IMG/VR virus record: IMGVR_UViG_3300026292_000003
Coordinates: 124,001-188,000 of that record
DNA length: 64,000 nucleotides
Reading direction: 5' to 3' (one strand)
This document shows positions 13,390-54,114 of the stretch, piece by piece. The first letter of the stretch is position 1, and each line of letters begins with the position of its first letter. A program made the translations under genes and the position numbers. The notes beneath the pieces are model-generated. The model was not told the origin of the DNA, ran no database searches, and saw nothing but the letters and a program-made list of their open reading frames with translations.

Positions 13390-13390
13390 A

Positions 13391-13530
13391 ATCGGGTTGT
13401 GCCGTAATACACACGTTTAACACTCACGGTTAAGTGTTAAGGACTATAACGAGACGGACGACTTACACTAGTAACAAAAAACATACACAAAGGATAAAAC
13501 AGGACCGGGCCCTTTTGAAATAAGCCCAAC
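13391..13530 (+). ncRNA. Candidate structured RNA downstream of the tRNA pair
   Basis: Non-coding; hairpins tgtg/caca, ttaacact/agtgttaa and gggc/gccc; complementary loops ccgt and acgg. Confidence 0.35.
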
Positions 13531-13647
13531 GTAGGACATACACAAAACTAAATATAATTATAAAAAGAATTTACAAGAAGTAAAGGAGACATTGAAGTAA
13601 GCACTCAAGTAGGTTTATAAACGGTGTGTAGCATAAGAAAGGAATTT

Positions 13648-13854
13648 ATGTTGAAAGAAGTAATGATAAATGCGGCGAAGAAACACGCCGAAGCAGAAAT
13701 TGACCTTCATAAAGCCAACATAGAAGTCTATATGCAACAAGTGGTTGGAATTGGTGAACATTCAGATATTATTGAAACGATCCAAAAAGAATTAGACAAA
13801 ATGGCTATGGCACATGATAGACTTGAGATGCTTAATAAGTATTTCAATGCATAA
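13648..13854 (+). CDS. Conserved marine-phage hypothetical protein
   Basis: AAAGGA RBS then ATG 13648; VGIGEHSDI motif. Confidence 0.75.
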   Translation: MLKEVMINAAKKHAEAEIDLHKANIEVYMQQVVGIGEHSDIIETIQKELDKMAMAHDRLEMLNKYFNA

Positions 13855-13860
13855 AAATTT

Positions 13861-13892
13861 AAGTTAACACATTTTTGTGTGTTAACTTTTCT
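13861..13892 (+). terminator. Putative intrinsic terminator or processing hairpin
   Basis: aagttaacac/gtgttaactt 10-bp stem followed by tttctt, just before tRNA-Ala. Confidence 0.5.
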
Positions 13893-13895
13893 TAT

Positions 13896-13971
13896 GGGGG
13901 ATTAGCTCAGTAGGGAGAGCGCCTGATTTGCATTCAGGAGGTCGCAGGTTCGATTCCTGTATCCTCCACCA
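13896..13971 (+). tRNA. tRNA-Ala(UGC)
   Basis: Cloverleaf with G3-U70, loop tttgcat and CCA. Confidence 0.97.
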
Positions 13972-13989
13972 ACTTTTAAGAGAACTATT

Positions 13990-14097
13990 TTGCCTTTTTA
14001 TACAGAACGTATTACAATTTATAAAGAACCTAAGCCAAAGTGGCCTTGGGTAGTAGTGGCAATTTTAATAATAATGGTAGTATTATGGATATTATAA
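13990..14097 (+). CDS. Small single-TM peptide (not in ORF track)
   Basis: TTG start; MPFYTERITIYKEPKPKWPWVVVAILIIMVVLWIL; overlaps the next start. Confidence 0.5.
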   Translation: MPFYTERITIYKEPKPKWPWVVVAILIIMVVLWIL

Positions 14098-15029
14098 TTT
14101 ATCAAAATAACACAGGATCAGCACCAGCAATTAATTGGTGGCTATCACAAGAACTAAACATAGGTCCAGAGTTTTATGCATTTAATGATGGATATTGTAG
14201 ACCTAGAGGACATCATGTAGGAGGAGTAGTAATTGAAGATAGTAACTCACCTTACCACGAAAAGCATAGAGAATCAATTAACTTATTAGAATCACAAAAT
14301 GAAGAATCAAATCACGAAACACAACACCTTGTAGTAAATGGTAAATTAACAAAACCAGAAATAAAACAACAAGGAACTATAGATGTAACAAAACCTTTTA
14401 TTAAAGATAAAAGTAAATTTGATTATTTTGTTTGGAGTAATTATGGTGGCAATTTAGTTAATCCTGAAACTATAATTAAAGCAGATAAAACTTTATTAGT
14501 TGATAATAGTGTAGCAGAACAATTATTTTTTTATATAAGTCAATATGCTTTCGCTTGGATTGAAACACCTGATGACATATCAGAACAAACAGAATCGTGG
14601 ATACAAGAACATCCTAGTATTAATAATTGGAAAGAAATATGGTATAAAAAACACCACAACAATGTTCTTGCAAAATGGAAAGATGGTGACTTAAAATATA
14701 TGTGGCAATTAAACTTTGCTCACAATGATTTAAGAACTGCTATAGAAAATGGTAAAGAAGATATTGAATTTATTAATGCAGATGATCATCAAAGATTATT
14801 TGAAGTAAAAAAACAAGAAGAAGATTTTTCAGAAACACTTTTCTCATATACAAATAAAGAAGTAGATCATATTGTTGTAGGAGATGATTGGTTTACTAAA
14901 ACAGAAGACATTATGGCATATTTGGGAATAGTTAATTCATTTAGATTAAAAAAGTTCTTAATTGATTACATCAAAGTGTATAAACAAAAGAAACAGTTAT
15001 ATACAGACACCTTCTCAAAATATCTATAA
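14085..15029 (+). CDS. Hypothetical protein
   Basis: ATG 14085 preferred over GTG 14040. Confidence 0.7.
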   Translation: MDIIIYQNNTGSAPAINWWLSQELNIGPEFYAFNDGYCRPRGHHVGGVVIEDSNSPYHEKHRESINLLESQNEESNHETQHLVVNGKLTKPEIKQQGTIDVTKPFIKDKSKFDYFVWSNYGGNLVNPETIIKADKTLLVDNSVAEQLFFYISQYAFAWIETPDDISEQTESWIQEHPSINNWKEIWYKKHHNNVLAKWKDGDLKYMWQLNFAHNDLRTAIENGKEDIEFINADDHQRLFEVKKQEEDFSETLFSYTNKEVDHIVVGDDWFTKTEDIMAYLGIVNSFRLKKFLIDYIKVYKQKKQLYTDTFSKYL

Positions 15030-15043
15030 ATAAACAAGATTAT

Positions 15044-15119
15044 TCCTCGATAGCTCAGTTGGTAGAGCAGTTGACTGTTAATCAATTGGTCGCAGGTTCG
15101 AGTCCTGCTCGAGGAGCCA
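15044..15119 (+). tRNA. tRNA-Asn(GUU)
   Basis: Cloverleaf, loop ctgttaa, CCA; TATAAATA at 15025. Confidence 0.97.
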
Positions 15120-15120
15120 G

Positions 15121-15195
15121 GCGGGCGTAGCTCAGTGGTAGAGCGATTCGTTGCCAACGAATAGGTCGTCGGTTCGACCCCGATCGCCCGCTCCA
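15121..15195 (+). tRNA. tRNA-Gly(GCC)
   Basis: Cloverleaf, loop ttgccaa, U73 discriminator, CCA. Confidence 0.96.
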
Positions 15196-15201
15196 AATTT
15201 T

Positions 15202-15278
15202 GGCTCTGTAGCTCAGTTGGTTAGAGCATCCGACTCATATTCGGAAGGTCAGAAGTTCGAATCTTCTCAGAGCTACCA
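15202..15278 (+). tRNA. tRNA(CAU): elongator Met or Ile2
   Basis: Cloverleaf, loop ctcatat; lacks initiator features (no C1-A72, no three G-C pairs in the anticodon stem). Confidence 0.93.
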
Positions 15279-15307
15279 AACCGATAAATACATTATAGGA
15301 AAAAATA

Positions 15308-15784
15308 ATGAGAAACATTTATATAATATTAATTTTATCAGCAGTACTTACAATACTTCATTTGTTATATGCTCCAGCAATAGCAAAAGAAATAGAAATG
15401 AAAGTATACAATTACGAAATCACAAGAGTAATTGATGGAGACACAGTAGCATTTGCGGCACCATTTCTTCCAGCACCACTTAAACAAGAATTAAGTATAA
15501 GAGTATATGGAGTTGATACTCCAGAAAAAGGTTGGAGAGCAGAATGTGAGTCAGAAGCAAAATGGGGTGAAAAAGCTTCGCAGTTTACTAAAGATCAATT
15601 AAACAATGCTAAAAAATTACAAGTAGCCATTGCTAAATGGGATAAATTTGGTGGTAGAGTTTTAGGTGATATTATCATTGATGGCAAAAGTCTTAGACGT
15701 ATGCTTATTGAAAATGGATTTGCCAGAGAATATTACGGTGACAAAAAAGAAACTTGGTGTAAGCCAAAAAGACAAAAATCTTAG
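15308..15784 (+). CDS. Staphylococcal nuclease (SNase)-like protein with N-terminal TM/signal
   Basis: VIDGDT, IRVYGVDTPE and DKFGGRVLG. Confidence 0.9.
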   Translation: MRNIYIILILSAVLTILHLLYAPAIAKEIEMKVYNYEITRVIDGDTVAFAAPFLPAPLKQELSIRVYGVDTPEKGWRAECESEAKWGEKASQFTKDQLNNAKKLQVAIAKWDKFGGRVLGDIIIDGKSLRRMLIENGFAREYYGDKKETWCKPKRQKS

Positions 15785-15786
15785 TA

Positions 15787-15815
15787 TTGACATCTAATCA
15801 AAACAATAGTATAAT
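15787..15815 (+). promoter_or_regulatory. Consensus sigma70 promoter for tRNA-Asp/Glu
   Basis: TTGACA-17 bp-TATAAT. Confidence 0.85.
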
Positions 15816-15829
15816 AATAACTTAATTTA

Positions 15830-15906
15830 GGGGGTGTAGCTCAGTTGGTTAGAGCGCCTGCCTGTCACGCAGGAGGTCGAGGGTTCGAGTCCCTTCACTC
15901 TCGCCA
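15830..15906 (+). tRNA. tRNA-Asp(GUC)
   Basis: Cloverleaf, loop ctgtcac, G73, CCA. Confidence 0.96.
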
Positions 15907-15911
15907 CAAAT

Positions 15912-15986
15912 GGTCCCTTCGTCTATCGGTTAGGACACATGGTTTTCATCCATGAAAGAGGAGTTCGATTCTCCTAGGGACTACCA
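15912..15986 (+). tRNA. tRNA-Glu(UUC)
   Basis: Cloverleaf, Glu-type D-arm gtcta..ggac, loop ttttcat, CCA. Confidence 0.95.
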
Positions 15987-16038
15987 AAATTTAGAATTTC
16001 ATAAATAACATATAATAACTCCAAAGGAAATTCTAAAT

Positions 16039-16284
16039 ATGAAGATACGTTACTATCATAAGATTGACGGCTTTAGATGGGCTGGTTTTATATTGGCCAT
16101 GTTAAGTGCATATCTATTGAGTGGTGGTAATGCTGAAGTTCAATGGGTAGGTTGGGGTGTAGCTTGTTTTTCTTGTACCATATGGTTATATATGGGATAT
16201 AAAGACAAAGACATACCTAGAGCTTTAATGGAACTGATGTATTTGTGTCTTGCAATTAGAGGAATAATAAACTGGTTACAATGA
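16039..16284 (+). CDS. Small three-TM membrane protein
   Basis: Three hydrophobic helices; resembles 32409..32684. Confidence 0.7.
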   Translation: MKIRYYHKIDGFRWAGFILAMLSAYLLSGGNAEVQWVGWGVACFSCTIWLYMGYKDKDIPRALMELMYLCLAIRGIINWLQ

Positions 16285-22085: not shown

Positions 22086-22348
22086 TGAGACATTTTAAAA
22101 TTAATCCATATTTGGTTAAAAAAGGTTTTTATGTTAGTTCAATGTATTGGGGAGATTTACCCGGTGATGGATTTAAACTTATTTCAAGTGATGTTGTAGC
22201 AGGTCCTTTTAAAACTGCTGAAAGAGCACACGAAATTATGGAAAAGAATTTTAATTCTAATCCAATGGAATATGCAGTACACGGTCCAGCTAAAACTCCA
22301 AATGGAGATATTTGGTATAACAAAAATTACTATGGGGAGATTGTTTAG
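22085..22348 (+). CDS. Early hypothetical protein
   Basis: 87 aa, coupled. Confidence 0.7.
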   Translation: MRHFKINPYLVKKGFYVSSMYWGDLPGDGFKLISSDVVAGPFKTAERAHEIMEKNFNSNPMEYAVHGPAKTPNGDIWYNKNYYGEIV

Positions 22349-23460
22349 TGGAAAACATTACAAAACTAGAAACTTTATATAAAAGAGATACAACAGGTAA
22401 AGTCCGTATTTGGGAAGTTGAATACGGACATACAGGTGATACTGCTGGTACAAGAACTATTAGTGGTACACAAGATGGTCAAAAAGTTACTAGTGAATGG
22501 AATATAAGCACTCCTAAAAATGTAGGTAGAGCAAATGCCACTACTGCATTATCACAAGCACAATTTGAAGCACAGGCTTTATGGGATAAGAGAGTTGAAA
22601 AAGAGTATTTTACAGATGTAAGTAAAATTGACTCTTATGAAAAGTTTAAGCCAATGTTGGCACAAGACTATACTAAAAGACCACAGAGTAGTGGATACAG
22701 TCAACCTAAATTAGATGGTATCAGATGTATAGTAGATAAAAATGGAATGTGGACTAGAGCTGGAAAGCCTATTAATAGTTGTCCTCATATTTTTGAATCA
22801 TTAAAAACATTTATAGATGCAAATCCAAATATGATTATAGATGGTGAATTATATAATCATGAACTAAAAGCAGATTTTAATAAAATTACAAGTCTTGTTA
22901 GAAAAGTAAAATGTAGACCTAATGAGATTGCTGAAGCAAAAGAGTTAGTACAATATCACGTATATGATTGTTTTGATAGTAATAATCCTACTGCTAATTT
23001 TGTAGATAGAGTTAAAGTATTAAAAGAATTAAAAGATGAATATATCAGACCTGTAAGAACTGATATTTGCGAAACTCAGGAAGAATTAGATGTTTGTTAT
23101 AGTGACTATATGGAAAATGGTTATGAAGGACAAATGGTTAGAAACAATACACCTTATGAAAACAAAAGAAGTAAGAACTTGCTAAAAAGAAAAGAGTTCA
23201 AATCTGAAGAATATAAGGTTGTTGAAATGTTAGAAGGACAAGGTAACTGGTCAGGTTACACAAAAAGATTTGTACTTGAACTTCCAGATGGAAGACAGTT
23301 TGGAAGTGGTGTTAGAGGACAACAAGCACAATTAAAAGAATTATGGGAATCAAAAGAAACGCCAGATTGGGCTACTTGCAGATTCTTTGATTATACTCCA
23401 GATGGTGTTCCAAGATTTCCTGTAATAGTTGATTATGGAAAAGGACAAAGGGAGGACTAA
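22348..23460 (+). CDS. ATP-dependent DNA ligase
   Basis: Motif I QPKLDGIR, IIDGELY, YHVYDC, YEGQMVR, LLKRK and OB-fold with FFDYTPDGVPRFP. Confidence 0.92.
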   Translation: MENITKLETLYKRDTTGKVRIWEVEYGHTGDTAGTRTISGTQDGQKVTSEWNISTPKNVGRANATTALSQAQFEAQALWDKRVEKEYFTDVSKIDSYEKFKPMLAQDYTKRPQSSGYSQPKLDGIRCIVDKNGMWTRAGKPINSCPHIFESLKTFIDANPNMIIDGELYNHELKADFNKITSLVRKVKCRPNEIAEAKELVQYHVYDCFDSNNPTANFVDRVKVLKELKDEYIRPVRTDICETQEELDVCYSDYMENGYEGQMVRNNTPYENKRSKNLLKRKEFKSEEYKVVEMLEGQGNWSGYTKRFVLELPDGRQFGSGVRGQQAQLKELWESKETPDWATCRFFDYTPDGVPRFPVIVDYGKGQRED

Positions 23461-24568: not shown

Positions 24569-25084
24569 ATGGAATTGATTAGAAGAGCACTTGAATTTTC
24601 TACTGCGGCACACGCCGCAGTAGGCCAGAAAAGAAAGTATACGGGTGAAGATTATATTGTTCACCCTATTGCCGTTTCTGAGATTGTTGCGGCTTTTGGT
24701 GGATCAAAAGAAATGGTAGCCGCGGCCTTGTTACATGATACAGTAGAAGATACTAATGTAACCAGAGAGCAAATTGCTGAAGAATTTGGTTGGAAGATTT
24801 TTAAGTTAGTTGTAGAATTAACTGATGTAACTAAACCAGAAGATGGTAATAGAGCAACACGTAAAGCTATAGAAGCTAAACGTTTAGGTATGGCTAGTAA
24901 AGAAGCACAAATGATTAAACTAGCAGATCTTATTGATAACACAAAAACAATAGTAAAACATGATCCTAAATTTGCAGAAGTTTATATAAAAGAAAAAATA
25001 GATCTATTAGAGGCTATGGATAAAGTTCATGGTACAGATTTGTATATGAAAGCTAACCTTCAATTACAGGAAGTGCATGATTGA
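24569..25084 (+). CDS. HD-domain (p)ppGpp hydrolase-like protein (Mesh1/SAH type)
   Basis: AH..QKRK..GEDYIVHP, LLHDTVEDT and IKLADLIDN. Confidence 0.85.
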   Translation: MELIRRALEFSTAAHAAVGQKRKYTGEDYIVHPIAVSEIVAAFGGSKEMVAAALLHDTVEDTNVTREQIAEEFGWKIFKLVVELTDVTKPEDGNRATRKAIEAKRLGMASKEAQMIKLADLIDNTKTIVKHDPKFAEVYIKEKIDLLEAMDKVHGTDLYMKANLQLQEVHD

Positions 25085-27254: not shown

Positions 27255-29024
27255 ATGAGGTATTTTGGTTATTGGACAATATTAGTAGCATTGGCAATCA
27301 GTGCAGTAGCGGCCTACTACAGTATCGTTGGCCTAGTTGCTATATTTTCTGCGGCTATGATACCTATTATTATCATGGGTTCCGTATTAGAAATTGGTAA
27401 ACTAACGTCGGCAGTTTGGTTACACTTAAATTGGCGGCAGGCACCCATTCTTATTAAAACGTATCTATCCGTGGCAGTATTGTTGCTTATGTTTATCACA
27501 AGTATGGGTATATTTGGCTTTTTAAGTAAAGCACATATCCAGCAAACAAGTCTAGCCACGGAGAACGTAGCACAAATAGAAATTATTGAAGATAGTATTG
27601 TTAGAATCAAACAAGACGTAGTTAGATTTGAAAATAAAATTAAAGAATATGAGAACAAAGATGATAAAATTGATACTACAATACAAGATAAGATTGCACT
27701 AGAGCAAGAAAGAATTAATACCGCATATGACGGTGTTAATCCTTCTATTGAAGAGTTAAACAAACGTATTGAAAAGCAGTTAGCTGACAGAGAAAAGACT
27801 ATTGAACCATACACACGTGAATTAGATAAGATTCAAAGTGATTTAGCATTAATAGATCAATATGTAGCAGATGAAGAAATTAAAAAGCTACAAGGTATGA
27901 TTGGTGCTAGGCAAGATGGTAGATATGGTAGTAGAACTGCTAAAGCAGTTAAAGAGTATAGAGAAACTTTAAATACACGTAAAGACGAAATTTTAAAAAT
28001 TATAAACAACATAAAAACACAGGAAGATCCAGTAATTACTGATGCTAGAAATGAGATCAAGAGACTAAGAGCATTAGCAGAACAACAGATTGCTGATTCA
28101 AATGAATTGATTACTAGACTCAGATCACAGTTAGGCCAGGGGCAAGTAGAAGATAGTACAGAAGAGATAATACTATTAAGAGATAATATTAATGCATCTA
28201 ACACAGAACTCAGCGAATTATATACTAAAAAAATTGCGTTAGAGGGAGAGAGTAGACAATTAGAAGCAGAAGTAGGCCCGGTTAAATATATTGCAGAATT
28301 AATATATGGCGACGAAGCAACAAGAAATATGCTGGAAGACGCCGTTAGATTTGTTATGTTAATTCTTGTGTTTGTTTTTGACCCGTTGGCCATTGTACTT
28401 GTTATTTCAGGTATCATATTGGTAGAAAGGAATGCCAGGCCAGGCAAAAAGACAAAAATCTTAAATGAAAAAACAGTACAAGAAGAACAAGCTAAACCTA
28501 TCAAAGACAGCGACATCGGAGAAAATGATACAGATATTGAGAGCGGGCCAGAAGCTACCGAAGAGTCTGATGTACAAGATGAAATTCTGGAACAAGAAGA
28601 AGTAATTGAACGTGTTCCTATGACAGAGGAAGAAGAGTATGCCAATGCAGGTATCACTAAAGAAGAAGCAGAAAAAGATCCTGAAATCTACAAAGACGAA
28701 GAAGGCAAAGAATATACAGTTGATGCAAAAACTGGAGAACGTAAGTATGTAATCAACAAAGTACAATGGGAACTAAATAAAAAAGAGAGAGCGGCGGCAA
28801 GAAAAGAAAAGAAACAATTAGTAGATAAAATTGTTGCTGAAATGAGAAGTACAGGAAGTTGGCCAGGTACAAGCTATATGGAAGGCGAAGGTGTTGTTAA
28901 AAAGAAAATTGAACAAATATTTGCCGACGATGCATCTTTAGAGTTAAAAGAACTTATGTCAAGAGCAGATGATTCAGTACTACAAGAAGTATATAACGAA
29001 ATATTAAAAGATACTAAAAAATGA
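27255..29024 (+). CDS. Membrane protein with long coiled coil and acidic C-tail
   Basis: N-terminal TMs, coiled coil, EVGPVKYIAELIYG and FVFDPLAI second TM block. Confidence 0.8.
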   Translation: MRYFGYWTILVALAISAVAAYYSIVGLVAIFSAAMIPIIIMGSVLEIGKLTSAVWLHLNWRQAPILIKTYLSVAVLLLMFITSMGIFGFLSKAHIQQTSLATENVAQIEIIEDSIVRIKQDVVRFENKIKEYENKDDKIDTTIQDKIALEQERINTAYDGVNPSIEELNKRIEKQLADREKTIEPYTRELDKIQSDLALIDQYVADEEIKKLQGMIGARQDGRYGSRTAKAVKEYRETLNTRKDEILKIINNIKTQEDPVITDARNEIKRLRALAEQQIADSNELITRLRSQLGQGQVEDSTEEIILLRDNINASNTELSELYTKKIALEGESRQLEAEVGPVKYIAELIYGDEATRNMLEDAVRFVMLILVFVFDPLAIVLVISGIILVERNARPGKKTKILNEKTVQEEQAKPIKDSDIGENDTDIESGPEATEESDVQDEILEQEEVIERVPMTEEEEYANAGITKEEAEKDPEIYKDEEGKEYTVDAKTGERKYVINKVQWELNKKERAAARKEKKQLVDKIVAEMRSTGSWPGTSYMEGEGVVKKKIEQIFADDASLELKELMSRADDSVLQEVYNEILKDTKK

Positions 29025-29473
29025 AATTAGATAATAGTTCTTATACGGTTACTCCTCCAGATCTAATGTTAACAGAACACGGTGTAAGTATTCTAGTTTC
29101 TAGTACCGACGAAAAGTTAATAAAAAAAGTAAAAGATATATTTGAAAAATATATCGCAACAAGCATTGTATTCTATATACAACAAAAACCAACAAACTCA
29201 AATACCCTACCATGGCTATGGAATGTATCAAAAACTTGTGAATTTATGATCATTGATCTTGATACCTGTGCAGAACCAGATATAATTGCAGGATTAATGA
29301 AATCAAGAGACGGTGAGAATACTGTACTATTTTACAGTGATAAGTACACTAGAAGAGATACAATAAAACTAATAAACGCAACAGGCGAAAATTTAGTAGT
29401 CACTAGGATGGAAGATATACATAACTATATAAGGTTACAAATGAACCCAGAGTATTTTGATGAGACCAAATGA
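29021..29473 (+). CDS. Hypothetical protein
   Basis: 150 aa, coupled. Confidence 0.7.
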   Translation: MKLDNSSYTVTPPDLMLTEHGVSILVSSTDEKLIKKVKDIFEKYIATSIVFYIQQKPTNSNTLPWLWNVSKTCEFMIIDLDTCAEPDIIAGLMKSRDGENTVLFYSDKYTRRDTIKLINATGENLVVTRMEDIHNYIRLQMNPEYFDETK

Positions 29474-30671
29474 TATAATCTGCAATTTTTGCGGAAAAAG
29501 TAGAACCCAAGTAAAAAAATTATTAGCAGGTGAGAATTCTAATCACATCTGTTCAGATTGCGTTGAGCTATGTTATGGTATTCTACAAAACAATGAAGTT
29601 AAAATAGAAAACACAATTCAAAAGAAATTTGTTCTTCCTACACCTAGAGAAATACACAAACATTTAGATGATTATGTTATAAGTCAAGATAAAGCAAAAA
29701 AGACTTTAAGTGTAGCAGTATATAATCATTATAAGAGAATAACATCAAATACAAAAACAAAATTACAAAAAGGCAACGTGTTTATGGCAGGTCCTACAGG
29801 AACTGGTAAAACACTAATGGCACAAACACTAGCCAATCATTTAGATGTACCATTTGTAGTTACTGATGCTACAGTTATTACAGAAAGTGGATACGCAGGT
29901 GAAGATGCAGAAGTGTTAATACACAAATTGTTTCAAGCGGCAGATTATGATATAGAAAGAGCAGAACGTGGAATAATATATATTGACGAAATAGATAAAA
30001 AAGCAAAACGTAATGATTTTGTTAGTTTAAGCAGAGATGTAAGTGGAGAAGGAGTTCAACAAAGTTTATTAAAACTAATAGAAGGTTCTAAAGTAACAGT
30101 ACCTAACAAGCCTCAAAGTAACCCAGAAAAAGTAGTTGTTGATACAACAAATATATTGTTTATTGTTGGTGGTGCATTTGTTGGGTTAGATGAAGTAGTT
30201 GCTAATAGACTTGGTAAATCAAAAATTGGTTTTAATGGCGAAGAAGGACATAAGATAGAAAATTGGACAGATTACTTACAAACTAAAGACTTGGTAAAGT
30301 ATGGATTAATACCAGAGTTTATTGGTAGATTTGCAAGTACTAACGTGTTAAGTAATTTAACCAAGGAAGACCTGGTAAAGATATTAATAGAACCAAAAGA
30401 TGCTATAGTAGAGCAGATCAAAGAGTTATTTTTACTTGACAAAATACAAATAGAGTTTAAAATGGAAGCATTGGAAGAGGTAGCAGATATAGCAATAAAA
30501 GAAGAAATTGGAGCCAGAGGGTTACGTAAGATACTCGATGGTGCATTACTTGAATTGCAATATAGATTACCAGAATTATTTAACGAAGGTATAAGAAAAA
30601 TTATTATTACAAAGAATGTTATTTCTAAAAACGAAGAACCACACTATATCAAAGGCAAAAATGCAACATAA
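29457..30671 (+). CDS. clpX: ATP-dependent Clp protease ATP-binding subunit ClpX
   Basis: C4 zinc finger, GPTGTGKT, IDEIDK, RDVSGEGVQQ and IGF loop. Confidence 0.96.
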   Translation: MMRPNDIICNFCGKSRTQVKKLLAGENSNHICSDCVELCYGILQNNEVKIENTIQKKFVLPTPREIHKHLDDYVISQDKAKKTLSVAVYNHYKRITSNTKTKLQKGNVFMAGPTGTGKTLMAQTLANHLDVPFVVTDATVITESGYAGEDAEVLIHKLFQAADYDIERAERGIIYIDEIDKKAKRNDFVSLSRDVSGEGVQQSLLKLIEGSKVTVPNKPQSNPEKVVVDTTNILFIVGGAFVGLDEVVANRLGKSKIGFNGEEGHKIENWTDYLQTKDLVKYGLIPEFIGRFASTNVLSNLTKEDLVKILIEPKDAIVEQIKELFLLDKIQIEFKMEALEEVADIAIKEEIGARGLRKILDGALLELQYRLPELFNEGIRKIIITKNVISKNEEPHYIKGKNAT

Positions 30672-31182
30672 ACGTTTTAAGAGAAAAGATCTGAAGCCTT
30701 TATATACTGCTAACGAAAGAATTAGATTTCCAGAAATTAGAGTTTCCTTACCAGATGGCGATAGTCAGGTCATGTCTACAAAGGAAGCCTTAGCAAAAGC
30801 AAAAGAAATGCAGTTAGACTTAATACTAATAGCTGAAAAAGCACAGCCACCAGTATGTAGAATAGTCTCACTCAATAAACATTTGTATGAGCTAAAGCAA
30901 AAAGAAAAACTGGCTAAAAAGAAACAACGCGAAAGCATTGTAGAAGTCAAAGAAATACGTATGGGTGTTAATATTGATACTCATGATTTGGAAACAAAAG
31001 CTAATATGGCTCGTAAGTTCTTAGACAAAAATAATAAACTAACAGTTATAGTGACAATGAAAGGCAGAGAACGTAGTAGGCCGGAGTCTGCTAAAGAAGT
31101 ACTAAATACATTTGCTGATAAACTTGGAATTAAATACGAGCAAGTCAGTATTCAGAGTCACAGAATAACTGGAAAAACATAG
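30661..31182 (+). CDS. infC: Translation initiation factor IF-3
   Basis: NERIR..IRV, LDLILIAEKAQPPVCRI, KEIRMGVNIDTHD, KGRE; ATG 30661 preferred. Confidence 0.92.
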   Translation: MQHKRFKRKDLKPLYTANERIRFPEIRVSLPDGDSQVMSTKEALAKAKEMQLDLILIAEKAQPPVCRIVSLNKHLYELKQKEKLAKKKQRESIVEVKEIRMGVNIDTHDLETKANMARKFLDKNNKLTVIVTMKGRERSRPESAKEVLNTFADKLGIKYEQVSIQSHRITGKT

Positions 31183-31188
31183 AAAAAT

Positions 31189-31476
31189 ATGGCATATAAT
31201 AGAAATAATAAAAATTACACCAGTAGTTGGCAGTCAAACGATAGACGCCCTAGACGTGAAGATAAACCTAAAGTTGGAGGTCTAACCGTTGAAGTAAGAA
31301 ACGGAAATCTTGAACAGGCTTTAAGAAGACTGAAAAAGATGATAGCCAAAGAAGGTTTAATGCAAGAAGTTCGTGACCGTAGATACTTTATAAGTAATAC
31401 GGAAAAAAGACTGAAAGCAGAAGCGGCTGGAAAAGCTAGACATCGTAGACGTATCGCTAAAGATAATCCAAAGTAA
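31189..31476 (+). CDS. rpsU: Ribosomal protein bS21 with N-terminal extension
   Basis: VEVRNGNLEQALRRLKK..KEGL..E.R.R.YF..EKR. Confidence 0.88.
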   Translation: MAYNRNNKNYTSSWQSNDRRPRREDKPKVGGLTVEVRNGNLEQALRRLKKMIAKEGLMQEVRDRRYFISNTEKRLKAEAAGKARHRRRIAKDNPK

Positions 31477-31523: not shown

Positions 31524-31826
31524 ATGACAAGAACTCAAGAGACGGGTGTTGCAGAGATTACCAAGTTAAAATCTCCACCTAAGTATTGTGTAATATTACT
31601 CAATGACGATTCTACTCCTATGGAGTTTGTTATTAATATATGTCAAACTATATTCAACAAGACTAAAGCAAAAGCAGAAGCTATTACATTAGAAGTACAT
31701 AAAAAAGGTAAAGGCGTAGCAGGAGTTTATAGTTACGAAGTAGCAGAACAGAAATGTGTAGAAACTGTAACCGAAGCAAGAAGAAACGGCTTTCCTTTAG
31801 ATGTTACATTAGAAAAAACAGAGTAA
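31524..31826 (+). CDS. clpS: ClpS adaptor
   Basis: PPKY.VILLNDDSTPMEFV, VHKKGKG and FPL; AGGAGG RBS. Confidence 0.93.
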   Translation: MTRTQETGVAEITKLKSPPKYCVILLNDDSTPMEFVINICQTIFNKTKAKAEAITLEVHKKGKGVAGVYSYEVAEQKCVETVTEARRNGFPLDVTLEKTE

Positions 31827-32695: not shown

Positions 32696-33124
32696 ATGAA
32701 AATAGGATTTACTTGTTCAACATTTGATTTACTACACGCCGGGCATATTGCTATGTTGCGAGAAGCTAAAGCACAATGTGATTATTTAATAATAGGATTG
32801 CAAACAGATCCTACAATAAGCAGACCAACAAAGAATTCACCTATACAAACAGTTGTAGAAAGATATACACAATTAAAAGCAGTAGGGTATGTAGATGAAA
32901 TAATTCCATATACTACTGAACAAGATTTAGAAGATATACTTTCTATGTATAATATTGATGTAAGGGTATTAGGAGAAGAATATAGAGAAAAAGATTTTAC
33001 AGGAAAAGATATCTGTAAGCAGAGAGATATTGCTCTATACTTTAATAAGCGAGATCACAGGTTCAGTTCAACAGAATTGAGGCAACGTGTTAACACAAAG
33101 GAAATGAAAAATGAGAGTGCGTGA
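32696..33124 (+). CDS. Cytidylyltransferase (TagD-like)
   Basis: TFDLLHAGH (HIGH-like), GLQTDP and RFSST. Confidence 0.88.
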   Translation: MKIGFTCSTFDLLHAGHIAMLREAKAQCDYLIIGLQTDPTISRPTKNSPIQTVVERYTQLKAVGYVDEIIPYTTEQDLEDILSMYNIDVRVLGEEYREKDFTGKDICKQRDIALYFNKRDHRFSSTELRQRVNTKEMKNESA

Positions 33125-34232
33125 AGAAGTTAAACTAAATTTTGAAGATGTATTAATGGAACCAAAACGTTCTACATTAGGTAGTAGACGTGACGTACAA
33201 ATGACTAGAAAGTTTACATTTAGAAACTCTGGTAAAGTGATTGACTTCTGTCCTATATTTGCTAGTAATATGGATGGTGTAGGTACATTTGAAGTAGCTA
33301 AAGTATTACAAGAACATAAAATGATGACTGTAATTACAAAAAGTACACCACTAGAAGAATGGAAAGCGGCCGCTGGTACAGGTTTAAGAATGCAAAGTAT
33401 AAGTGTATGTACAGGTACAAATAAAATGTGGGACCCAGATGCACCAGACTATGCTAATATGAAAGCAGTACTAGAAGCATTTCCTGATGTAAAAATGATT
33501 ACTGTAGATGTTGCTAATGCTTATCACGAGAATTTTGTAGACTTTATTAAGATGATTAGAGATGAATATCCTGATAAAGTTATTGTAGCAGGTAACGTAG
33601 TTACACCAGAGATGGTAGAAGAATTAATTATAAACGGTGCTGACGTAGTTAAAATTGGTATTGGACCAGGCTCAGTATGTACAACAAGAACAATGACAGG
33701 TATTGGAGTACCACAGTTTTCAGCTATATTAGAATGTGCAGATGCGGCAAATGGCGTTGATGGACATATTATGGCAGATGGTGGTTGTGTACACCCAGGA
33801 GATATTGCAAAAGCACTTGGTGGTGGAGCTCATATGGTTATGATAGGTGGTATGTTAGCAGGACACAAAGAAGGTGGTGGTAAACTTATCACTAAACATA
33901 CAGCCACAGGTGGTGCGTATAAAACACCTGAGGGAACATATGTTCCTTATTATGAAGAACAACAGTTTGTTGAGTTCTACGGAATGAGTTCAGATCGTGC
34001 TAGAGAGAAGCATGGCAAACGAAAAGATGGATATAGAGGTAACGAAGGTAGACATATTGTTATGCCTTACAGAGGACCTATTAATGACACAGTTGAGAAT
34101 ATACTAGGTGGTGTTAGATCAGCGGCCACTTATATTGGAGCAAGACGTTTAAAGGATATGCCAAAGTGTGCAACATTCGTAAGAACAAATAATGTTATCA
34201 ATAGAACTTACGAGCAATTCACAGTAAAATAA
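33111..34232 (+). CDS. guaC: GMP reductase
   Basis: VDVANAY, KIGIGPGSVCTTR, ADGG, FYGMSS, ILGGVRSA. Confidence 0.92.
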   Translation: MRVREEVKLNFEDVLMEPKRSTLGSRRDVQMTRKFTFRNSGKVIDFCPIFASNMDGVGTFEVAKVLQEHKMMTVITKSTPLEEWKAAAGTGLRMQSISVCTGTNKMWDPDAPDYANMKAVLEAFPDVKMITVDVANAYHENFVDFIKMIRDEYPDKVIVAGNVVTPEMVEELIINGADVVKIGIGPGSVCTTRTMTGIGVPQFSAILECADAANGVDGHIMADGGCVHPGDIAKALGGGAHMVMIGGMLAGHKEGGGKLITKHTATGGAYKTPEGTYVPYYEEQQFVEFYGMSSDRAREKHGKRKDGYRGNEGRHIVMPYRGPINDTVENILGGVRSAATYIGARRLKDMPKCATFVRTNNVINRTYEQFTVK

Positions 34233-38279: not shown

Positions 38280-38309
38280 TTGACAATTAAACTTTTACGT
38301 GTATAAATA
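38280..38309 (+). promoter_or_regulatory. Overlapping sigma70-like and late promoters for tmRNA
   Basis: TTGACA-16-TATAAA with TATAAATA at 38302-38309. Confidence 0.65.
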
Positions 38310-38314
38310 TACAA

Positions 38315-38600
38315 GTAAGCGATGAAGCGACTTAACGGTAGACTGGACCTCGGGGCAGTACCGAGCAGGTCCACCATAAACACTTTGTAGTTACCAGAAC
38401 TAGATGGTACCCTAAAGTAAGGACAGACGCAGAGTGTTTATGATGGGCCTGAATTAGGATCGACAGATATTATAGGGAAGTGGAGTTTACCGGGTGATTG
38501 CGTAATTGATCAAATTTTATAAACGCAGAAGATAATTTTGCAATAGCGGCCTAATTTAGGCACGTAGGGGTGGGAACTACCTGGCAACAGAAGTGCCACT
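38315..38600 (+). ncRNA. ssrA: Circularly permuted two-piece tmRNA (alphaproteobacterial type)
   Basis: Acceptor piece ends caggtcc-a-cca (38366-38376) with T-arm ctcgg/ggcagta/ccgag; 68-nt intervening segment; coding piece starts gggcctg (38445) with G3-U70; tag AEDNFAIAA* at 38525-38554. Confidence 0.9.
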
Positions 38601-38665
38601 GTATTCTTTAGAATTCAGTTACTACAAAAAGATAAACTTCTTATCTTTATATCAAGGAAATATAT

Positions 38666-40450: not shown

Positions 40451-40527
40451 GGACCATTAGCTCAGCTGGATAGAGCGCCTGTCTACGGAACAGGAGGCCA
40501 GGAGTTCGAATCTCTTATGGTCCGCCA
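40451..40527 (+). tRNA. tRNA-Arg(ACG)
   Basis: Cloverleaf, A20, loop ctacgga, CCA. Confidence 0.96.
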
Positions 40528-40543
40528 AAAGATAAATAGACGA

Positions 40544-40945
40544 GTGAAACTGCTAGAGCATAAGCATATTATAATAAGAGCGGAAGTACTTGATCCGCCA
40601 CGTGCAGAAAACCCTACAAGTGAACAAGTAAAAACTCTGATCAATGATATTGGAATGAAAATTATGATGGGTCCTTTTGCCCAAAGATCAGAAATGGTAG
40701 GTAATGCAGGACTTACAGTAGCAACAATTATAGAAACATCACACGTAATACTACATACCTGGGATGAAGTGCATCCAGCATTAATGCAATTAGATGTTTA
40801 TACTTGCAGTCATTTAGATCCTAAAATAGTTTTTAAATGGCTAGAACAATTCAAGCCAACCAAAATAGATTACAAATATATTGATAGGGAATTTAAGTTA
40901 GATCTTAAACGGAAAAAGATACCTTTCCATATTGAACAGGATTAG
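40544..40945 (+). CDS. S-adenosylmethionine decarboxylase-like proenzyme (class 1b)
   Basis: GLTVATIIETSHVILHTW and QLDVYTCS; GTG 40544 (the ORF-track start lies inside the tRNA). Confidence 0.8.
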   Translation: MKLLEHKHIIIRAEVLDPPRAENPTSEQVKTLINDIGMKIMMGPFAQRSEMVGNAGLTVATIIETSHVILHTWDEVHPALMQLDVYTCSHLDPKIVFKWLEQFKPTKIDYKYIDREFKLDLKRKKIPFHIEQD

Positions 40946-41594
40946 TTAAATATCTTTTAATATATTTTTTAGCGACATCTTCGTTATGCCAATGTTCGTG
41001 TGACACTTGTTTTAAATCTTCACACCAAAAAATATTAATAAACCCATTCTTTTTATAGTGTTCGTGTTGATATGTATCATCTACTAGTGATTCACTATAC
41101 GTGGAAATTAAAACTTCATTAGGAACATGATTATTATATGTTAATCCATTCCAAGCATCGTCTACATTATTAAATTTTGTATAAGGCAATTCTTTTGTAG
41201 TACCATAATCAGGAAAATTAAAATCTAAAACTATACATTCAGTAGATAAATTTTGTGCCCATCTTGCATTTAATCTACTTACACCTGGGTGGCAAAAAGT
41301 ATTACCAGGTTCTCTTCTTACTATTGGTTTGTATACTATGGATTGATCAGCCATCCATAAACATTGAACAGCACCTCTTACACGTCGGTGAAAGTCATCT
41401 ATTAAATGATTGTCTGTATAATGTTTCCAATTAATATTATTGTGATAGTTCCTTATAAACCTAGTCCATTCTTTTGGTCTTTCTAAGTAACGTTCTTCGG
41501 TATCTGTTATATCAGCAGTACCTATGTTACCTCCACGTTCTATAAGGTTATAGTAAAACTTTTTAAAATTATTATATGCTAAATTTTCTGCCAT
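40905..41594 (-). CDS. Hypothetical protein
   Basis: 229 aa; HPGVSRL motif. Confidence 0.7.
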   Translation of the reverse strand: MAENLAYNNFKKFYYNLIERGGNIGTADITDTEERYLERPKEWTRFIRNYHNNINWKHYTDNHLIDDFHRRVRGAVQCLWMADQSIVYKPIVRREPGNTFCHPGVSRLNARWAQNLSTECIVLDFNFPDYGTTKELPYTKFNNVDDAWNGLTYNNHVPNEVLISTYSESLVDDTYQHEHYKKNGFINIFWCEDLKQVSHEHWHNEDVAKKYIKRYLTNPVQYGKVSFSV

Positions 41595-42979
41595 GGAAAT
41601 AGTTTTGATAAGTATGGAAATTTTGGATCTTCATTAACTAAATTAATGTCAAATCCTCTAGTAACAAATTTATCAGGATGTTTATTAAAGAAATCTATAT
41701 AATCACTTTCAAGTCTTAGTCTAATATTTTTACTATATAGTATTGAATTAATTTCATAGTTAAAAGCATTACTTACATCGATAAAAACTTTTTTATCACT
41801 ATCCCAATCTATTTCATCTTTTAATTCTTTTTTTATTCTTGCTATTGCCATAAGATCAAGAACTCTAAATTCGTGTTTAAATGTTTTATAAGTTGTATTC
41901 CACCATTTTACAAAATCTTCACCTAGTCCTTCTATATACTCGTCATTAAAATGTAAGTCTTTTTCGCATACAAATCTACTGCCAATTATAGGATTTTCTT
42001 TTTTATAATCCTTAACAAATTTAGACCAATTTCTTCCGTCCCAATTATTACTAATATACCATTGCATATGTACTGCAACAGTATCAATATCGTATGCAAC
42101 AAGTTTTCCGCCTTCTTCTAAGTTATTAATATATGCATTTGCTATCGGACTTATTCCACCGCTGGTACTATAAACAGTTTTACATTTATGATCTTTTTTT
42201 ATAGTATCTAGTGATTCAGTATTTGCACTATACCATCTTGCGTCCCATAAATCATGACCTACTTGAAATAGTTTTTCATAATGGTCCATCATTTCGCCGT
42301 ACAAATATTCTTTTCCATCTCTTAAATTATCATCCCATATACCAACTTTTTTACCTTGTTCCATAGCAACACGTAACAAGTTATGTCCTTGCCATTTGCC
42401 ACTTGCTTGTACAGTTTCATTTGTAGCCCATATTTCTGTGGGGTTATATGTCTGATCTCTTTTTCCTAATGTTACTTCACTTCTACGTATTTTTGGTGCA
42501 GTCCAATCTATATCGTCAAATTGATTTTCACCAAATTCTGGTCTTCCACTAGCAACCCACCATTCTAAATCAATGAACATACATTGAGGATGAATTTGCC
42601 ACCATCTATGTTTTCTATCTAATATGTGTCCTACAATAACACAATCTTTATATTGGTTATTCCAGTATTCTTTTGACTTTTCAATAAAATTACGTAGTAT
42701 TATACCTTGCTTACAAATAAGTAATTTTTTAAATCCAGTATCATATGCAATACTACATAGCTTAACAAACTCGTTTGCTTGTATTTGAGGTATACGTCTA
42801 TATTTAAAACTGTAAAAATCAAGAAGATTTTGAGTTATACCTTCGGTAGCTTTATCTTTTATTTTGTCGTTTAATAGCCAACCAATACCACAGTTGTCTG
42901 GTAGCTTGTCAGCAGTATGGTCAAACTGGAATATTTTTTCATGTCTCATATTTTGAACCTTTTTATTAACATAGTACAT
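41579..42979 (-). CDS. Two-domain hypothetical protein, paralogue of 20645..21748
   Basis: GT-like N-half (VGHILDR..IHPQC) and shared C-half; start may be ATG 42949. Confidence 0.7.
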   Translation of the reverse strand: MYYVNKKVQNMRHEKIFQFDHTADKLPDNCGIGWLLNDKIKDKATEGITQNLLDFYSFKYRRIPQIQANEFVKLCSIAYDTGFKKLLICKQGIILRNFIEKSKEYWNNQYKDCVIVGHILDRKHRWWQIHPQCMFIDLEWWVASGRPEFGENQFDDIDWTAPKIRRSEVTLGKRDQTYNPTEIWATNETVQASGKWQGHNLLRVAMEQGKKVGIWDDNLRDGKEYLYGEMMDHYEKLFQVGHDLWDARWYSANTESLDTIKKDHKCKTVYSTSGGISPIANAYINNLEEGGKLVAYDIDTVAVHMQWYISNNWDGRNWSKFVKDYKKENPIIGSRFVCEKDLHFNDEYIEGLGEDFVKWWNTTYKTFKHEFRVLDLMAIARIKKELKDEIDWDSDKKVFIDVSNAFNYEINSILYSKNIRLRLESDYIDFFNKHPDKFVTRGFDINLVNEDPKFPYLSKLFPWQKI

Positions 42980-43015
42980 TACTATTTATTATCTTTAATA
43001 AATCAAATTAAGTAG

Positions 43016-43044
43016 TTGACAACGACTACAAATGATGTTATATT
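43016..43044 (+). promoter_or_regulatory. sigma70 promoter
   Basis: TTGACA-17-TATATT with extended TG. Confidence 0.75.
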
Positions 43045-43055
43045 ATTAACATTGA

Positions 43056-43292
43056 ATGAGAAGGAAAACGGATATGATTACAAGCAGACAGGTAGTTGAG
43101 ATAATCAACGAAGAGATTGATAAGAATAATGAAGATAGTATCCGTAAGGCACTACAGAAGGTTAAAGATAGAATTGAGTTTCTTGAAGAATTAGAATTTG
43201 TTCATCAGCACAAACAACCAGTGTATGATGCTAGAAAATCTGAAGAACAGAAAGAAACTGCACAAAAACAGTTTAACGAGTATTTTAAATAG
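43056..43292 (+). CDS. Hypothetical protein
   Basis: 78 aa; start may be ATG 43074 after AAGGA. Confidence 0.65.
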   Translation: MRRKTDMITSRQVVEIINEEIDKNNEDSIRKALQKVKDRIEFLEELEFVHQHKQPVYDARKSEEQKETAQKQFNEYFK

Positions 43293-43294
43293 CC

Positions 43295-43462
43295 ATGGAG
43301 TACAGTGAACTAATAAACAAAATTCAAGTGCTAACGGAATCAGTAGAGGTATTCCGGAGTCGTATACAAGAACATGACACCGGATACCTGTACACTACCA
43401 TAAGCACAATTGAAGACTACATAGAAGAACTTGAAAAACAAGTTAAATCCTTAGATCATTAA
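43295..43462 (+). CDS. Small hypothetical protein (not in ORF track)
   Basis: MEYSELINKIQVLTESVEVFRSRIQEHDTGYLYTTISTIEDYIEELEKQVKSLDH. Confidence 0.6.
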   Translation: MEYSELINKIQVLTESVEVFRSRIQEHDTGYLYTTISTIEDYIEELEKQVKSLDH

Positions 43463-43486
43463 AGTAAAAAAAGTACCAAAAAGATG

Positions 43487-43515
43487 TTGACAAGTCGGTA
43501 ACATTATCGTACTAT
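43487..43515 (+). promoter_or_regulatory. sigma70 promoter
   Basis: TTGACA-17-TACTAT. Confidence 0.7.
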
Positions 43516-43543
43516 GTATATAAATTAAACAGAAGAGACGCAA

Positions 43544-43834
43544 ATGAAACTACAAGATCTTAAAATGGTACAAACTACAGTTCCTAATGGGGTTCAGGCC
43601 CTAGTGAAGTTTGGGCCCCATTACGAGCTGAGCATTGTCAAGAACGATGTCTCATATGGTGGCAAAATGGGACTATACGAAATTGCAGTATTTCTAGATA
43701 ACCAAATGACAGAACTACCCGGCATCACAGAGTCCGGAGATACAGTCAAAGGATTCCTTACAGAAGATAATGTAAATGATATCCTATCCTCAATGACCCA
43801 ATTGACAAAAAGGGAACCTCAACAAACAAACTAA
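43544..43834 (+). CDS. Early hypothetical protein
   Basis: YELSIV..SYGG..GLYEIAV..V.GFLT pattern. Confidence 0.75.
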   Translation: MKLQDLKMVQTTVPNGVQALVKFGPHYELSIVKNDVSYGGKMGLYEIAVFLDNQMTELPGITESGDTVKGFLTEDNVNDILSSMTQLTKREPQQTN

Positions 43835-43843
43835 TCAGCTATA

Positions 43844-43920
<77 letters not shown>

Positions 43921-43926
43921 ATTTAT

Positions 43927-44012
43927 GCGAGTGTGGCGGAATAGGTAGACGCAACGGACTTAAAATCCGTTATCTTTATGGTGTGTGGGTTCGAGTCCCT
44001 CCACTCGCACCA
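43927..44012 (+). tRNA. tRNA-Leu(UAA)
   Basis: Cloverleaf with long variable arm, loop cttaaaa, CCA. Confidence 0.96.
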
Positions 44013-53149: not shown

Positions 53150-53453
53150 TCTAAAAGTACCACAAATACTAAAAGTTAACACAGCACCTATAGAGAAACA
53201 TTCTTTAAAACTCCCTAAGGTTGATCAATATGATGCAAGATCATTGGAGTGGATAGTTCTTACTCCTGACAATGTAGACGAAGTGTTTGCAAAACTAAAA
53301 GCTAATAACATAGACCTCGTACTTTTTGCTGTAACTGATGATGGATACCAAAACTTATCGCTTAATATGGCTGATATAATTAAATTGGTAAAACAACAAA
53401 AATCCATTATAGCGGCTTACGAAAAGTACTTGGACAATGAAGAAGCTCAATAA
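53091..53453 (+). CDS. Putative o-spanin (Rz1-like lipoprotein)
   Basis: [18 protein letters not shown] lipobox; GGAAGG RBS then ATG 53091. Confidence 0.7.
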
Positions 53454-54114
53454 TCCTTGGTATATTCTTGGCGTTGAACCTAACGCATCGCTTACCGCGA
53501 TAAAAAAAGCATATAAAAGATTAGCAATTAGAATGCACCCAGACAAAGGTGGCTCTGTAGCTGATTGGTTAAATGTAAGTCAAGCATATGAAAAGATTTT
53601 AAAGAAAGAACACGTACCTGTAAAGAAAGGTAAAGATGTTAAATATGTTGATATATACTTAACTATACAACAACAAATAAATGGTTTTGAAGGCTTTGTA
53701 GTAATAGATGAAGAAAAAGAATTATATTTAAAAGTAAAAATACCAGCAGGTGCATTAAGAAATGATAAGTTTAGAGTAATACACAATGCTAAAAAGTACA
53801 TTATAAATATTAAAGAAAAAGCAGATAAAGTCTTTACAAGACAAGGAAATAATGTTATAGTATATAAAAAGTTAGATATAATAGACATAATGAAACAAAA
53901 ACCGTTTGTTGTTATATCTCCTTTAGGTGAATATCTCGAAGTACAAATTCCACCAAATACAGATTCTGGAAGTATAATTGTCGTAAAAGGACAAGGCTTA
54001 TACAACAGAAGAACAAAGAAAAGAGGAAACTTAAGAATTAACGTGAAAGTAAATATACCCACAGTGAACAAAGATAATGTTCAACAAATTATAAAAAGAT
54101 TAAAAGATGACTGA
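53437..54114 (+). CDS. DnaJ/CbpA-like co-chaperone
   Basis: J-domain with HPD and DnaJ C-terminal domain (GQGL..RGNL); no zinc finger. Confidence 0.88.

Follow-up and report, generated by a model that had tools for sequence, protein, structure and literature searches.

How does a phage-encoded ClpX choose its substrates when the loops with which the Escherichia coli enzyme reads the ssrA tag have been altered? The question is raised by a clpX gene in a 64,000-nucleotide stretch (bases 124001–188000; here called the window) of IMG/VR virus record IMGVR_UViG_3300026292_000003, a linear contig of 221,643 bp with 33.6% GC, estimated by CheckV to be ~60% complete. An earlier interpretation of this DNA from its letters and open reading frames (ORFs), which we refer to as the sequence-only reading, proposed that this ClpX has been retargeted away from ssrA-tagged proteins. 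We provide here a detailed comparison of the three loops which line the entry to the axial channel. They appear to have been rebuilt together in a single lineage of large marine phages and to have been maintained since, in a phage group whose members otherwise share their Clp genes and tmRNA. Phage-encoded ClpX and ClpP are already known from jumbo phages, and a comparative review mentions ClpP, ClpS, ClpA and ClpX in this group (PMC12484599, PMC7824862). The new element is therefore not another kind of system, but a set of conserved, rebuilt specificity loops.

What is known of ClpX substrate choice comes nearly all from the E. coli enzyme and its engineered mutants. The terminal Ala-Ala-COO- of the ssrA tag is held by Y153 and V154 of the pore-1 loop, T199 and V202 of pore-2, and R228 and H230 of the RKH loop; T199 hydrogen-bonds the tag carboxylate and V154 makes its contact partly through the backbone NH. 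The substitutions Y153A, V154F and R228A raise the Michaelis constant (KM) for ssrA at least 50-fold, while T199A, T199V, V202A and H230A give fitted KM values of 89–240 uM vs 1.3 uM for wild type. T199S raises it only ~4-fold, and R228A moves specificity towards an N-degron substrate (PMC7652416). Replacement of RKH by AAA abolishes degradation of ssrA substrates and increases ATPase activity ~5-fold, and the variants AKH, KHR and KRH slow degradation; the Arg-Lys-His motif was described in the same work as conserved and its loop as unique to ClpX-family enzymes (PMC7112951). Neutralising any one of the RKH residues shifts preference to untagged substrates (PMC9601184). Human ClpX, which has RKL and a Leu at both positions 199 and 230, degrades ssrA substrates only after bacterial loops have been grafted onto it (PMC7652416, bioRxiv 10.64898/2026.07.31.739446). 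The RKH loops have a mechanical part as well: they support folded substrates, and how charged substrates are unfolded depends on the charge of the entry ring. Deletion of two RKH loops lowers Vmax ~3-fold, and pore-1 is the main gripping element (bioRxiv 10.64898/2026.07.31.739446). The premise of the sequence-only reading, that RKH and pore loops set ssrA recognition and that RKH mutants shift specificity, is thus sound (PMC7652416, PMC7112951, PMC9601184). Our literature searches returned nothing on the specificity loops of phage ClpX, on a GYAG pore-1 or on a V154A mutant.

The window gene encodes a full-length ClpX, which scores 502.6 bits on NF003745, the NCBIfam equivalog model (cut-off 359), and 463.8 on TIGR00382 (cut-off 370.75). 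It carries the Pfam domains zf-C4_ClpX, AAA_2 and ClpB_D2-small, and its residues 7–401 align with E. coli ClpX (PDB 8e91) with a phmmer E value of 2.7e-116. The ATG at 29460 is a likelier start than the TTG at 29457. Full-length identity to E. coli ClpX (PDB 6wrf, 8e91) is 46–50% and both have the same domain order, a C4 zinc finger followed by the AAA+ large and small domains. An AlphaFold2 (AF2) model computed from a 55-sequence alignment has a mean predicted local distance difference test (pLDDT) score of 81.7 and superimposes on E. coli ClpX chains from ClpXP cryo-electron microscopy structures with template modelling (TM) scores of 0.8–0.9. Across 55 sequences, the four zinc-finger cysteines (9, 12, 32 and 35) are invariant, as are Walker A and B, the Arg finger FIGRF and the sensor-2 motif GARGLR of the single AAA+ module. 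The same holds for G258 and F259 of the ClpP-docking IGF loop, which is kept as KIGF within the clade to which the window belongs. Compared with its relative L002 (90% DNA identity), the gene has a synonymous divergence (dS) of 0.42 and a nonsynonymous divergence (dN) of 0.039, hence a dN/dS of 0.09. ATPase, zinc finger and IGF loop all look intact, and these motifs together with purifying selection predict an active enzyme.

All three substrate-entry loops differ from those of E. coli. In the phmmer alignment to 8e91, phage TESGYAGED stands opposite E. coli TEAGYVGED, and pore-1 reads GYAG, as the sequence-only reading had stated; the Tyr is kept and only the Val has become Ala, so that the aromatic-hydrophobic motif is varied rather than lost. 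That reading was also right that pore-2 (RDVSGE), the zinc finger and IGF are retained. It had overlooked a further change within pore-2, where Ser occupies the position of T199 (phage LSRDV vs E. coli ITRDV) beside a core, RDVSGEGVQQ, that the two enzymes share together with the IGF loop and the ATPase motifs. The third loop, the ClpX-specific hairpin, has three residues fewer than its E. coli counterpart. The phage segment aligns as IEGSKVTVPNK-PQSNPEK--VVVDT, with Q-S-N opposite R228-K229-H230, and the region that is GGRKHP in E. coli indeed reads VPNKPQSNPEK. This placement is unambiguous because conservation is strong on both flanks, LIEG...VP and VDT.NILF. The AF2 model shows a beta-hairpin with strands at 212–216 and 225–229 and a tip running from P216 to K225. 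In all, four of the six ssrA-contact residues are changed (V154A, T199S, R228 absent and H230 to S; Y153 and V202 are kept), and the charge of the tip falls from +2 plus a His (GGRKHP) to +1 (NKPQSNPEK). No RKH equivalent lies elsewhere in the protein, since the sole other basic triplet, HKH at 67–69, is aligned with E. coli R-N-H where the AAA+ module begins, away from the pore. The earlier statement that the protein lacks the RKH loop is accordingly correct for the triplet but not for the loop, as the hairpin is present in a rebuilt form with the conserved motif PNKPxHNPEK and an invariant Lys.

A word-index search of 5.8 billion proteins identified at least 120 clusters of relatives with 67–94% identity, from ENA, JGI, Logan and Tara Oceans assemblies and on contigs of up to 335 kb. 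GYAG in pore-1, (L)SRDVSGEGVQQ in pore-2 and the short hairpin are present in every one of the 120 clusters listed, and GYAG with a short loop is therefore not due to chance or to sequencing error. Within the hairpin (consensus PNKPQHNPEK), there is essentially no variation at P216, N217, K218 (K or R), P219 and K225 and very little at N222, P223 and E224, while positions 220 and 221 vary; residue 221 is His in most members of the clade and Ser in the window's own sublineage at 93–100% identity. This pattern shows a hairpin that has been rebuilt, not lost, and held by selection; a single basic residue is invariant in it, and most members have a His as well.

To place this clade we surveyed 80 IMG/VR loci encoding ClpX relatives. 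Pore-1 is GYVG in 75 of them, GYAG in four (L002–L005) and GYIG in one (L006), and the hairpin keeps GGRKHP in 61. L002–L004, near relatives at 93%, have the same loops as the window; L005 (56%) has GYAG with the loop TASKRGSKQP, and L006 (55%) has GYIG with PNLPKRVPEQ. Other viral lineages vary independently, with RKN in six loci, RRH in one and a deleted or rewritten loop in seven. Variation of the RKH loop is thus recurrent in phage ClpX (19/80 loci, together with the cultured phages PA5oct, Atu_ph07 and Phosso) and rare in the cellular ClpX sampled. Among the viral, cellular and cultured-phage ClpX surveyed, GYAG was found solely in the window's clade and L005. In a maximum-likelihood tree calculated with both loops masked, in which the clade has 22 representatives and no mitochondrial sequence was included, the window clade, L005 and L006 are monophyletic (support 1.0; stem length 0.36 substitutions per site), and every member is without RKH and has GYAG or GYIG. 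Monophyly with the loops masked shows that the pocket was remodelled once, and the rebuilt state has been kept by purifying selection.

The cellular survey covers about 20 genomes, among which departures from GYVG and RKH are rare. ClpX from ~15 genomes of diverse phyla combines GYVG with GGRKHP, and no cellular ClpX surveyed at >=38% identity departs from GYVG. The departures come from a 0.5-Mb reduced genome, a candidate Nanoarchaeia metagenome-assembled genome (38% identity) and contig L090, whose loop resembles those of phage lineages L074, L075 and L081. Three alphaproteobacteria with small genomes (1.0–1.7 Mb) gave the sole DNA matches to the phage transfer-messenger RNA (tmRNA). Their ClpX is canonical, and the idea that the phage copied an RKH-less host ClpX was rejected for these sampled bacteria, which have the most similar tmRNA fragments. 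Low GC, the alpha-type tmRNA and the match of a neighbouring 589-aa protein to a Pelagibacter myophage suggest that the host is SAR11-like or another streamlined marine alphaproteobacterium.

The tmRNA itself had been seen as a paradox next to a ClpX without RKH. Whole-record searches largely dissolve it: the same alpha-type tmRNA and kind of tag are also present in relatives with canonical GYVG and RKH, as are a bona fide ClpP and ClpA. These relatives include both complete genomes (343 and 519 kb, with terminal repeats). The paradox is weakened further by the canonical pore loops of the phage ClpA (KYRG in D1, GYVG in D2) and by the canonical ClpX of the candidate host lineage. Tags include ANANYAPEMALAA, ANDNYQPEMAMAA and ADENLALAA in the canonical-RKH phages and AEDNFAIAA, ANANYEPEMALAA, ANDNYKPELAIAA and ANDNIAYEDFALAA in the remodelled clade and its sisters. 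No tag was seen to co-vary with the loops, since tags end in [LIM]AA in both groups. Two other candidate associations were rejected: ClpP, which within +/-6 kb of clpX had appeared to be a special acquisition of the RKH-less clade, is found in many canonical relatives, and neither tmRNA nor ClpA is specific to that clade. The tmRNA, ClpP and ClpA are therefore common to the whole phage group, and the sole change in one lineage is in the ClpX pocket. Close sister phages with a canonical pocket on the same ClpP, ClpA, ClpS and tmRNA background provide built-in controls. As a separate observation, the window's own tag is unusually short, with 9 residues vs 10–21 in relatives and alphaproteobacteria, and looks like the usual ANDN...A[LI]AA tag minus its middle.

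The reading that we favour, with a probability of roughly 0.5, is that of an active unfoldase working with phage ClpP whose pocket was switched in one step, from high-affinity reading of Ala-Ala-COO- to other degrons or to adaptor-delivered substrates. The ancestor of a large marine jumbo-phage clade would have remodelled all three ssrA-pocket loops at the top of the axial channel together: V154 to A in pore-1, T199 to S in pore-2, and a hairpin cut by three residues to PNKPxHNPEK (in the window, x is Q and the His is Ser). Purifying selection would then have held this state. The enzyme would grip ssrA-type C-terminal degrons much more weakly and its substrate range would have moved to other degron classes or to substrates brought by adaptors, while its conserved IGF loops would dock it on phage ClpP and possibly on host ClpP too. 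The phage would thereby gain a ClpXP partly orthogonal to the canonical ClpXP of its host, and the disposal of proteins bearing the phage tmRNA tag would fall chiefly to host ClpXP and to ClpAP of either phage or host. Since four of six contact positions differ, weakened direct recognition of ssrA is a reasonable prediction, and weaker binding of the tag is likewise what analogy with the E. coli mutants and with human ClpX would predict.

Several observations weigh against this reading. Two of the four contact changes are mild, namely T199S and V154A, the Ala being smaller yet still hydrophobic at a contact made in part by the backbone. Basic residues remain in the loop (invariant Lys218, Lys225, His221 in most members and KR dipeptides in L005 and L006), so that a reduced basic patch may still attract the alpha-carboxylate, and net charge over the whole hairpin is similar in the two enzymes (phage +1 with no His; E. 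coli 0 with one His). Tags ending in [LIM]AA in both groups would be expected too if the phage ClpX still read them. Finally, what points to a pairing with phage ClpP is IGF conservation and gene proximity only.

Such points lead to the possibility that there has been no real retargeting and that the rebuilt pocket (Y146, A147, S192, V195, K218, H/S221) still recognises Ala-Ala-COO- tags. Phage ClpXP would then be a dedicated disposal system for the products of its own tmRNA, and the loop changes would represent compensated drift or a tuning of affinity or unfolding rate. The modest cost of T199S in E. coli, the backbone contact at V154 and the basic residues kept in the loop are all in keeping with this, as is the fact that remodelled-clade tags remain AIAA or ALAA, as in sister phages with canonical RKH, and that ClpX, ClpP and tmRNA travel together across the phage group. 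Yet R228A or H230A alone raises KM at least 50-fold in E. coli and the window ClpX has neither residue, and a mere permutation of RKH to KHR or KRH already slows degradation (PMC7112951). Moreover, a hairpin shorter by three residues cannot bring its tip to the same position, and three pocket loops changed on one stem branch look like a specificity switch, not drift. We regard continued reading of ssrA tags as the main rival, though less likely than retargeting; if it is the case, the finding would be an ordinary sequence variant.

The literature on the mechanical role of these loops raises another alternative, in which the entry loops, through a shorter and less basic hairpin and a smaller pore-1 side chain, mainly alter grip, unfolding power or tolerance of charge instead of the choice of degron. 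The ~3-fold loss of Vmax on deletion of two RKH loops and the importance of entry-ring charge (bioRxiv 10.64898/2026.07.31.739446) are consistent with it, as are the ~5-fold increase in ATPase of RKH to AAA (PMC7112951) and the part of pore-1 as main gripping element. However, mechanical effects are compatible with a change of specificity and do not exclude it, and T199, which was replaced by Ser at the same time, forms a hydrogen bond with the tag carboxylate, so that its substitution suggests an effect on recognition more than on grip. An explanation by mechanics in the main seems improbable to us.

A more specific version of the retargeting that we favour can be advanced only tentatively. 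GYAG, Ser199 and PNKPxHNPEK may together form a new, selected pocket which reads a class of signal other than Ala-Ala-COO-, perhaps with the help of ORF150, a translationally coupled gene immediately upstream. ORF150 gave no match in Pfam, NCBIfam or PHROG, and its only matches in the ESM Atlas are virus-only uncharacterised clusters. Homologues with 17–90% identity overlap the clpX start from upstream in 30 related viral loci, canonical-RKH lineages included. Prediction of a ClpX–ORF150 complex gave no answer (score 0.00), which speaks neither for nor against binding. ORF150 is a candidate partner or adaptor of ClpX.

The presence of a phage clpP, 2.6 kb upstream of clpX, bears on a last group of explanations. 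The sequence-only reading had suggested that the phage protein could redirect or poison host ClpP; a related idea is a ClpP-independent chaperone for virion assembly or replication. The IGF loops are kept and binding to host ClpP is possible in principle, and Bacillus phage G ClpX and ClpP were detected by virion proteomics, with reviews proposing assembly roles for jumbo-phage ClpX (PMC12484599, PMC7824862). Nevertheless, the phage ClpP is complete, with its catalytic Ser (GQACSMG), His (MIHQP) and Asp contexts present, and is syntenic in relatives; the ATPase motifs are intact and invariant and dN/dS is low, and a poison would need no conserved, rebuilt substrate pocket. Both a decoy for host ClpP and a chaperone acting without ClpP are, in our judgement, very unlikely.

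How unusual is the retargeted pocket that we propose among known ClpX proteins? A natural precedent is human mitochondrial CLPX (PDB 9dvy), an orthologue changed, like the window protein, at the positions of T199 and H230, which illustrates that loop changes can retarget ClpX. The two differ in detail, since human CLPX keeps R, K and the full loop length, whereas the phage enzyme keeps a hydroxyl at 199, loses R228 and shortens the loop. They are ~42% identical, and the phage enzyme branches among bacterial and phage ClpX in our tree, which has no mitochondrial sequence. As human CLPX also departs from it, the RKH motif marks the ssrA-reading bacterial subtype rather than the whole ClpX family. 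The E. coli mutants R228A/AKH, RKH to AAA, H230A, V154F and T199S affect positions which differ naturally in the phage enzyme and lead one to expect a large rise in ssrA KM and better use of an N-terminal degron. These are, however, single engineered changes in a canonical pocket, while the phage loops would represent a coordinated, selected rebuild whose net effect cannot be obtained by summing those of the mutants.

Cultured jumbo phages encode ClpX proteins at 42–47% identity: Bacillus phage G (gp258), Agrobacterium Atu_ph07, Sinorhizobium Phosso, Pseudomonas PA5oct and Prevotella Lak phages. Phage G and Lak-B2 are canonical (GYVG and RKH), Atu_ph07 and Phosso have RKN, and PA5oct combines GYVG with a loop without RKH (LNSNSMFSPRQE); GYAG and the PNKPxHNPEK loop are absent from all of them. 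Atu_ph07 and Phosso share with the window the gene order hypothetical protein–ClpX–IF3, and in PA5oct ClpX is followed by S21. The PA5oct protein (L141, MK797984.1 169742-170968; loop LELNSNSMFSPRQE) also has a changed pore-2, AGSDVSGE, and offers an independent and experimentally tractable phage ClpX with a non-canonical degron pocket.

Features of the window are listed in Table 1.

Table 1. Positions of the Clp genes, ClpX motifs, RNA genes and neighbouring genes in the window
Feature	Position	Strand	Remarks
ATP-dependent DNA ligase	22348-23460	+	Pfam
HD_4-type HD-domain protein	24569-25084	+	Pfam
Phage clpP, 195 aa	26227..26814	+	PF00574 256.6 bits; NCBIfam NF001368 291 bits, above cut-off
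589-aa protein	27255..29024	+	N-terminal membrane segment, long coiled-coil, acidic region; no family match
ORF150, 150 aa, uncharacterised	29021..29473	+	stop overlaps clpX start by 17 nt (14 nt from ATG 29460)
clpX	29457..30671	+	404 aa from TTG at 29457; 403 aa from ATG at 29460
ClpX N-terminal C4 zinc-binding domain	29475..29588	+	Cys 9, 12, 32, 35; PF06689 54.3 bits
ClpX Walker A	29790..29813	+	GPTGTGKT, intact
ClpX pore-1 loop	29889..29900	+	GYAG (E. coli G152-Y153-V154-G155; V154 to A); alignment to 8e91
ClpX Walker B	29973..29999	+	IIYIDEIDK, intact
ClpX pore-2 loop	30027..30062	+	LSRDVSGEGVQQ; T199 to S, V202 kept; alignment to E. coli ClpX
ClpX RKH-equivalent beta-hairpin, residues 212-229	30090..30143	+	tip PNKPQSNPEK at 30102-30131
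ClpX IGF tripeptide (ClpP-docking loop), residues 257-259	30225..30233	+	KIGFNG, residues 256-261
IF-3 homologue	30616..31182	+	TIGR00168 131.8 bits
Ribosomal protein bS21 homologue	31189..31476	+	TIGR00030 55 bits
ClpS N-degron adaptor homologue	31524..31826	+	PF02617 103.7 bits
Class-I glutamine amidotransferase/peptidase C26	31839-32408	+	Pfam
Cytidylyltransferase	32696-33124	+	Pfam
IMPDH/GMP-reductase-family protein	33111-34232	+	Pfam
Permuted (two-piece) alpha-proteobacterial-type tmRNA	38280..38645	+	tag AEDNFAIAA; ARAGORN; Rfam RF01849 97 bits, RF04321 98 bits
tRNA cluster 1 (Thr, Leu, Ala, Asn, Gly, Met, Asp, Glu)	13219-15986	+	of 11 tRNA genes in total
tRNA cluster 2 (Arg, Arg, Leu)	40451-44012	+	of 11 tRNA genes in total
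DnaJ-like protein	53437..54114	+	precedes clpA
Phage clpA, 753 aa	54107..56368	+	TIGR02639 759.6 bits, E 3e-228; below the 993-bit equivalog cut-off

By these assignments, the full-length ClpA together with ClpP, ClpX and ClpS constitutes a complete phage Clp system. No SmpB or SspB homologue was found in the 221-kb contig, which is ~60% complete. Genes around clpX follow the order ClpP, SNase, the 589-aa membrane/coiled-coil protein, ORF150, ClpX, IF-3, S21, (HSP20) and ClpS. This order is kept from ClpP to ClpS in 330-kb contigs whose ClpX is 74% identical, and most of the 80 viral loci have it in part. The longest IF-3 ORF overlaps the clpX end by 56 nt, with a Pfam match starting at residue 33, and its true start is uncertain. 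The auxiliary genes around the module were assigned through Pfam matches on the window or on syntenic relatives. The 589-aa protein has a homologue near clpX in 77 of 83 related loci; among cultured phages its best match is Pelagibacter phage Mosig (55% over part of the protein), followed by the jumbo phages XacN1 and SCTP-2. In L111 (ena:ERZ1699695 contig_7950; 6142-6573, 15066-16277), which is one of a pair of almost identical relatives of ~330 kb, the predicted clpP product is shortened to 143 aa and the IMPDH-family gene is broken into parts; these broken genes may reflect an assembly error or a real inactivation.

The main natural departure from the E. coli pattern named in the literature cited here is mitochondrial CLPX, and the phage clade described here is a second natural example, with a degron pocket that is conserved in hundreds of environmental variants. 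As a natural specificity switch it would be of interest both to those who study the mechanism of ClpX and to phage biologists. If the more tentative idea of a pocket for a new class of signal is true, the phage would have a ClpXP orthogonal to that of the host, with which it could remove selected proteins of the host or its own during takeover, without competition from the flood of ssrA-tagged proteins which the phage tmRNA helps to create.

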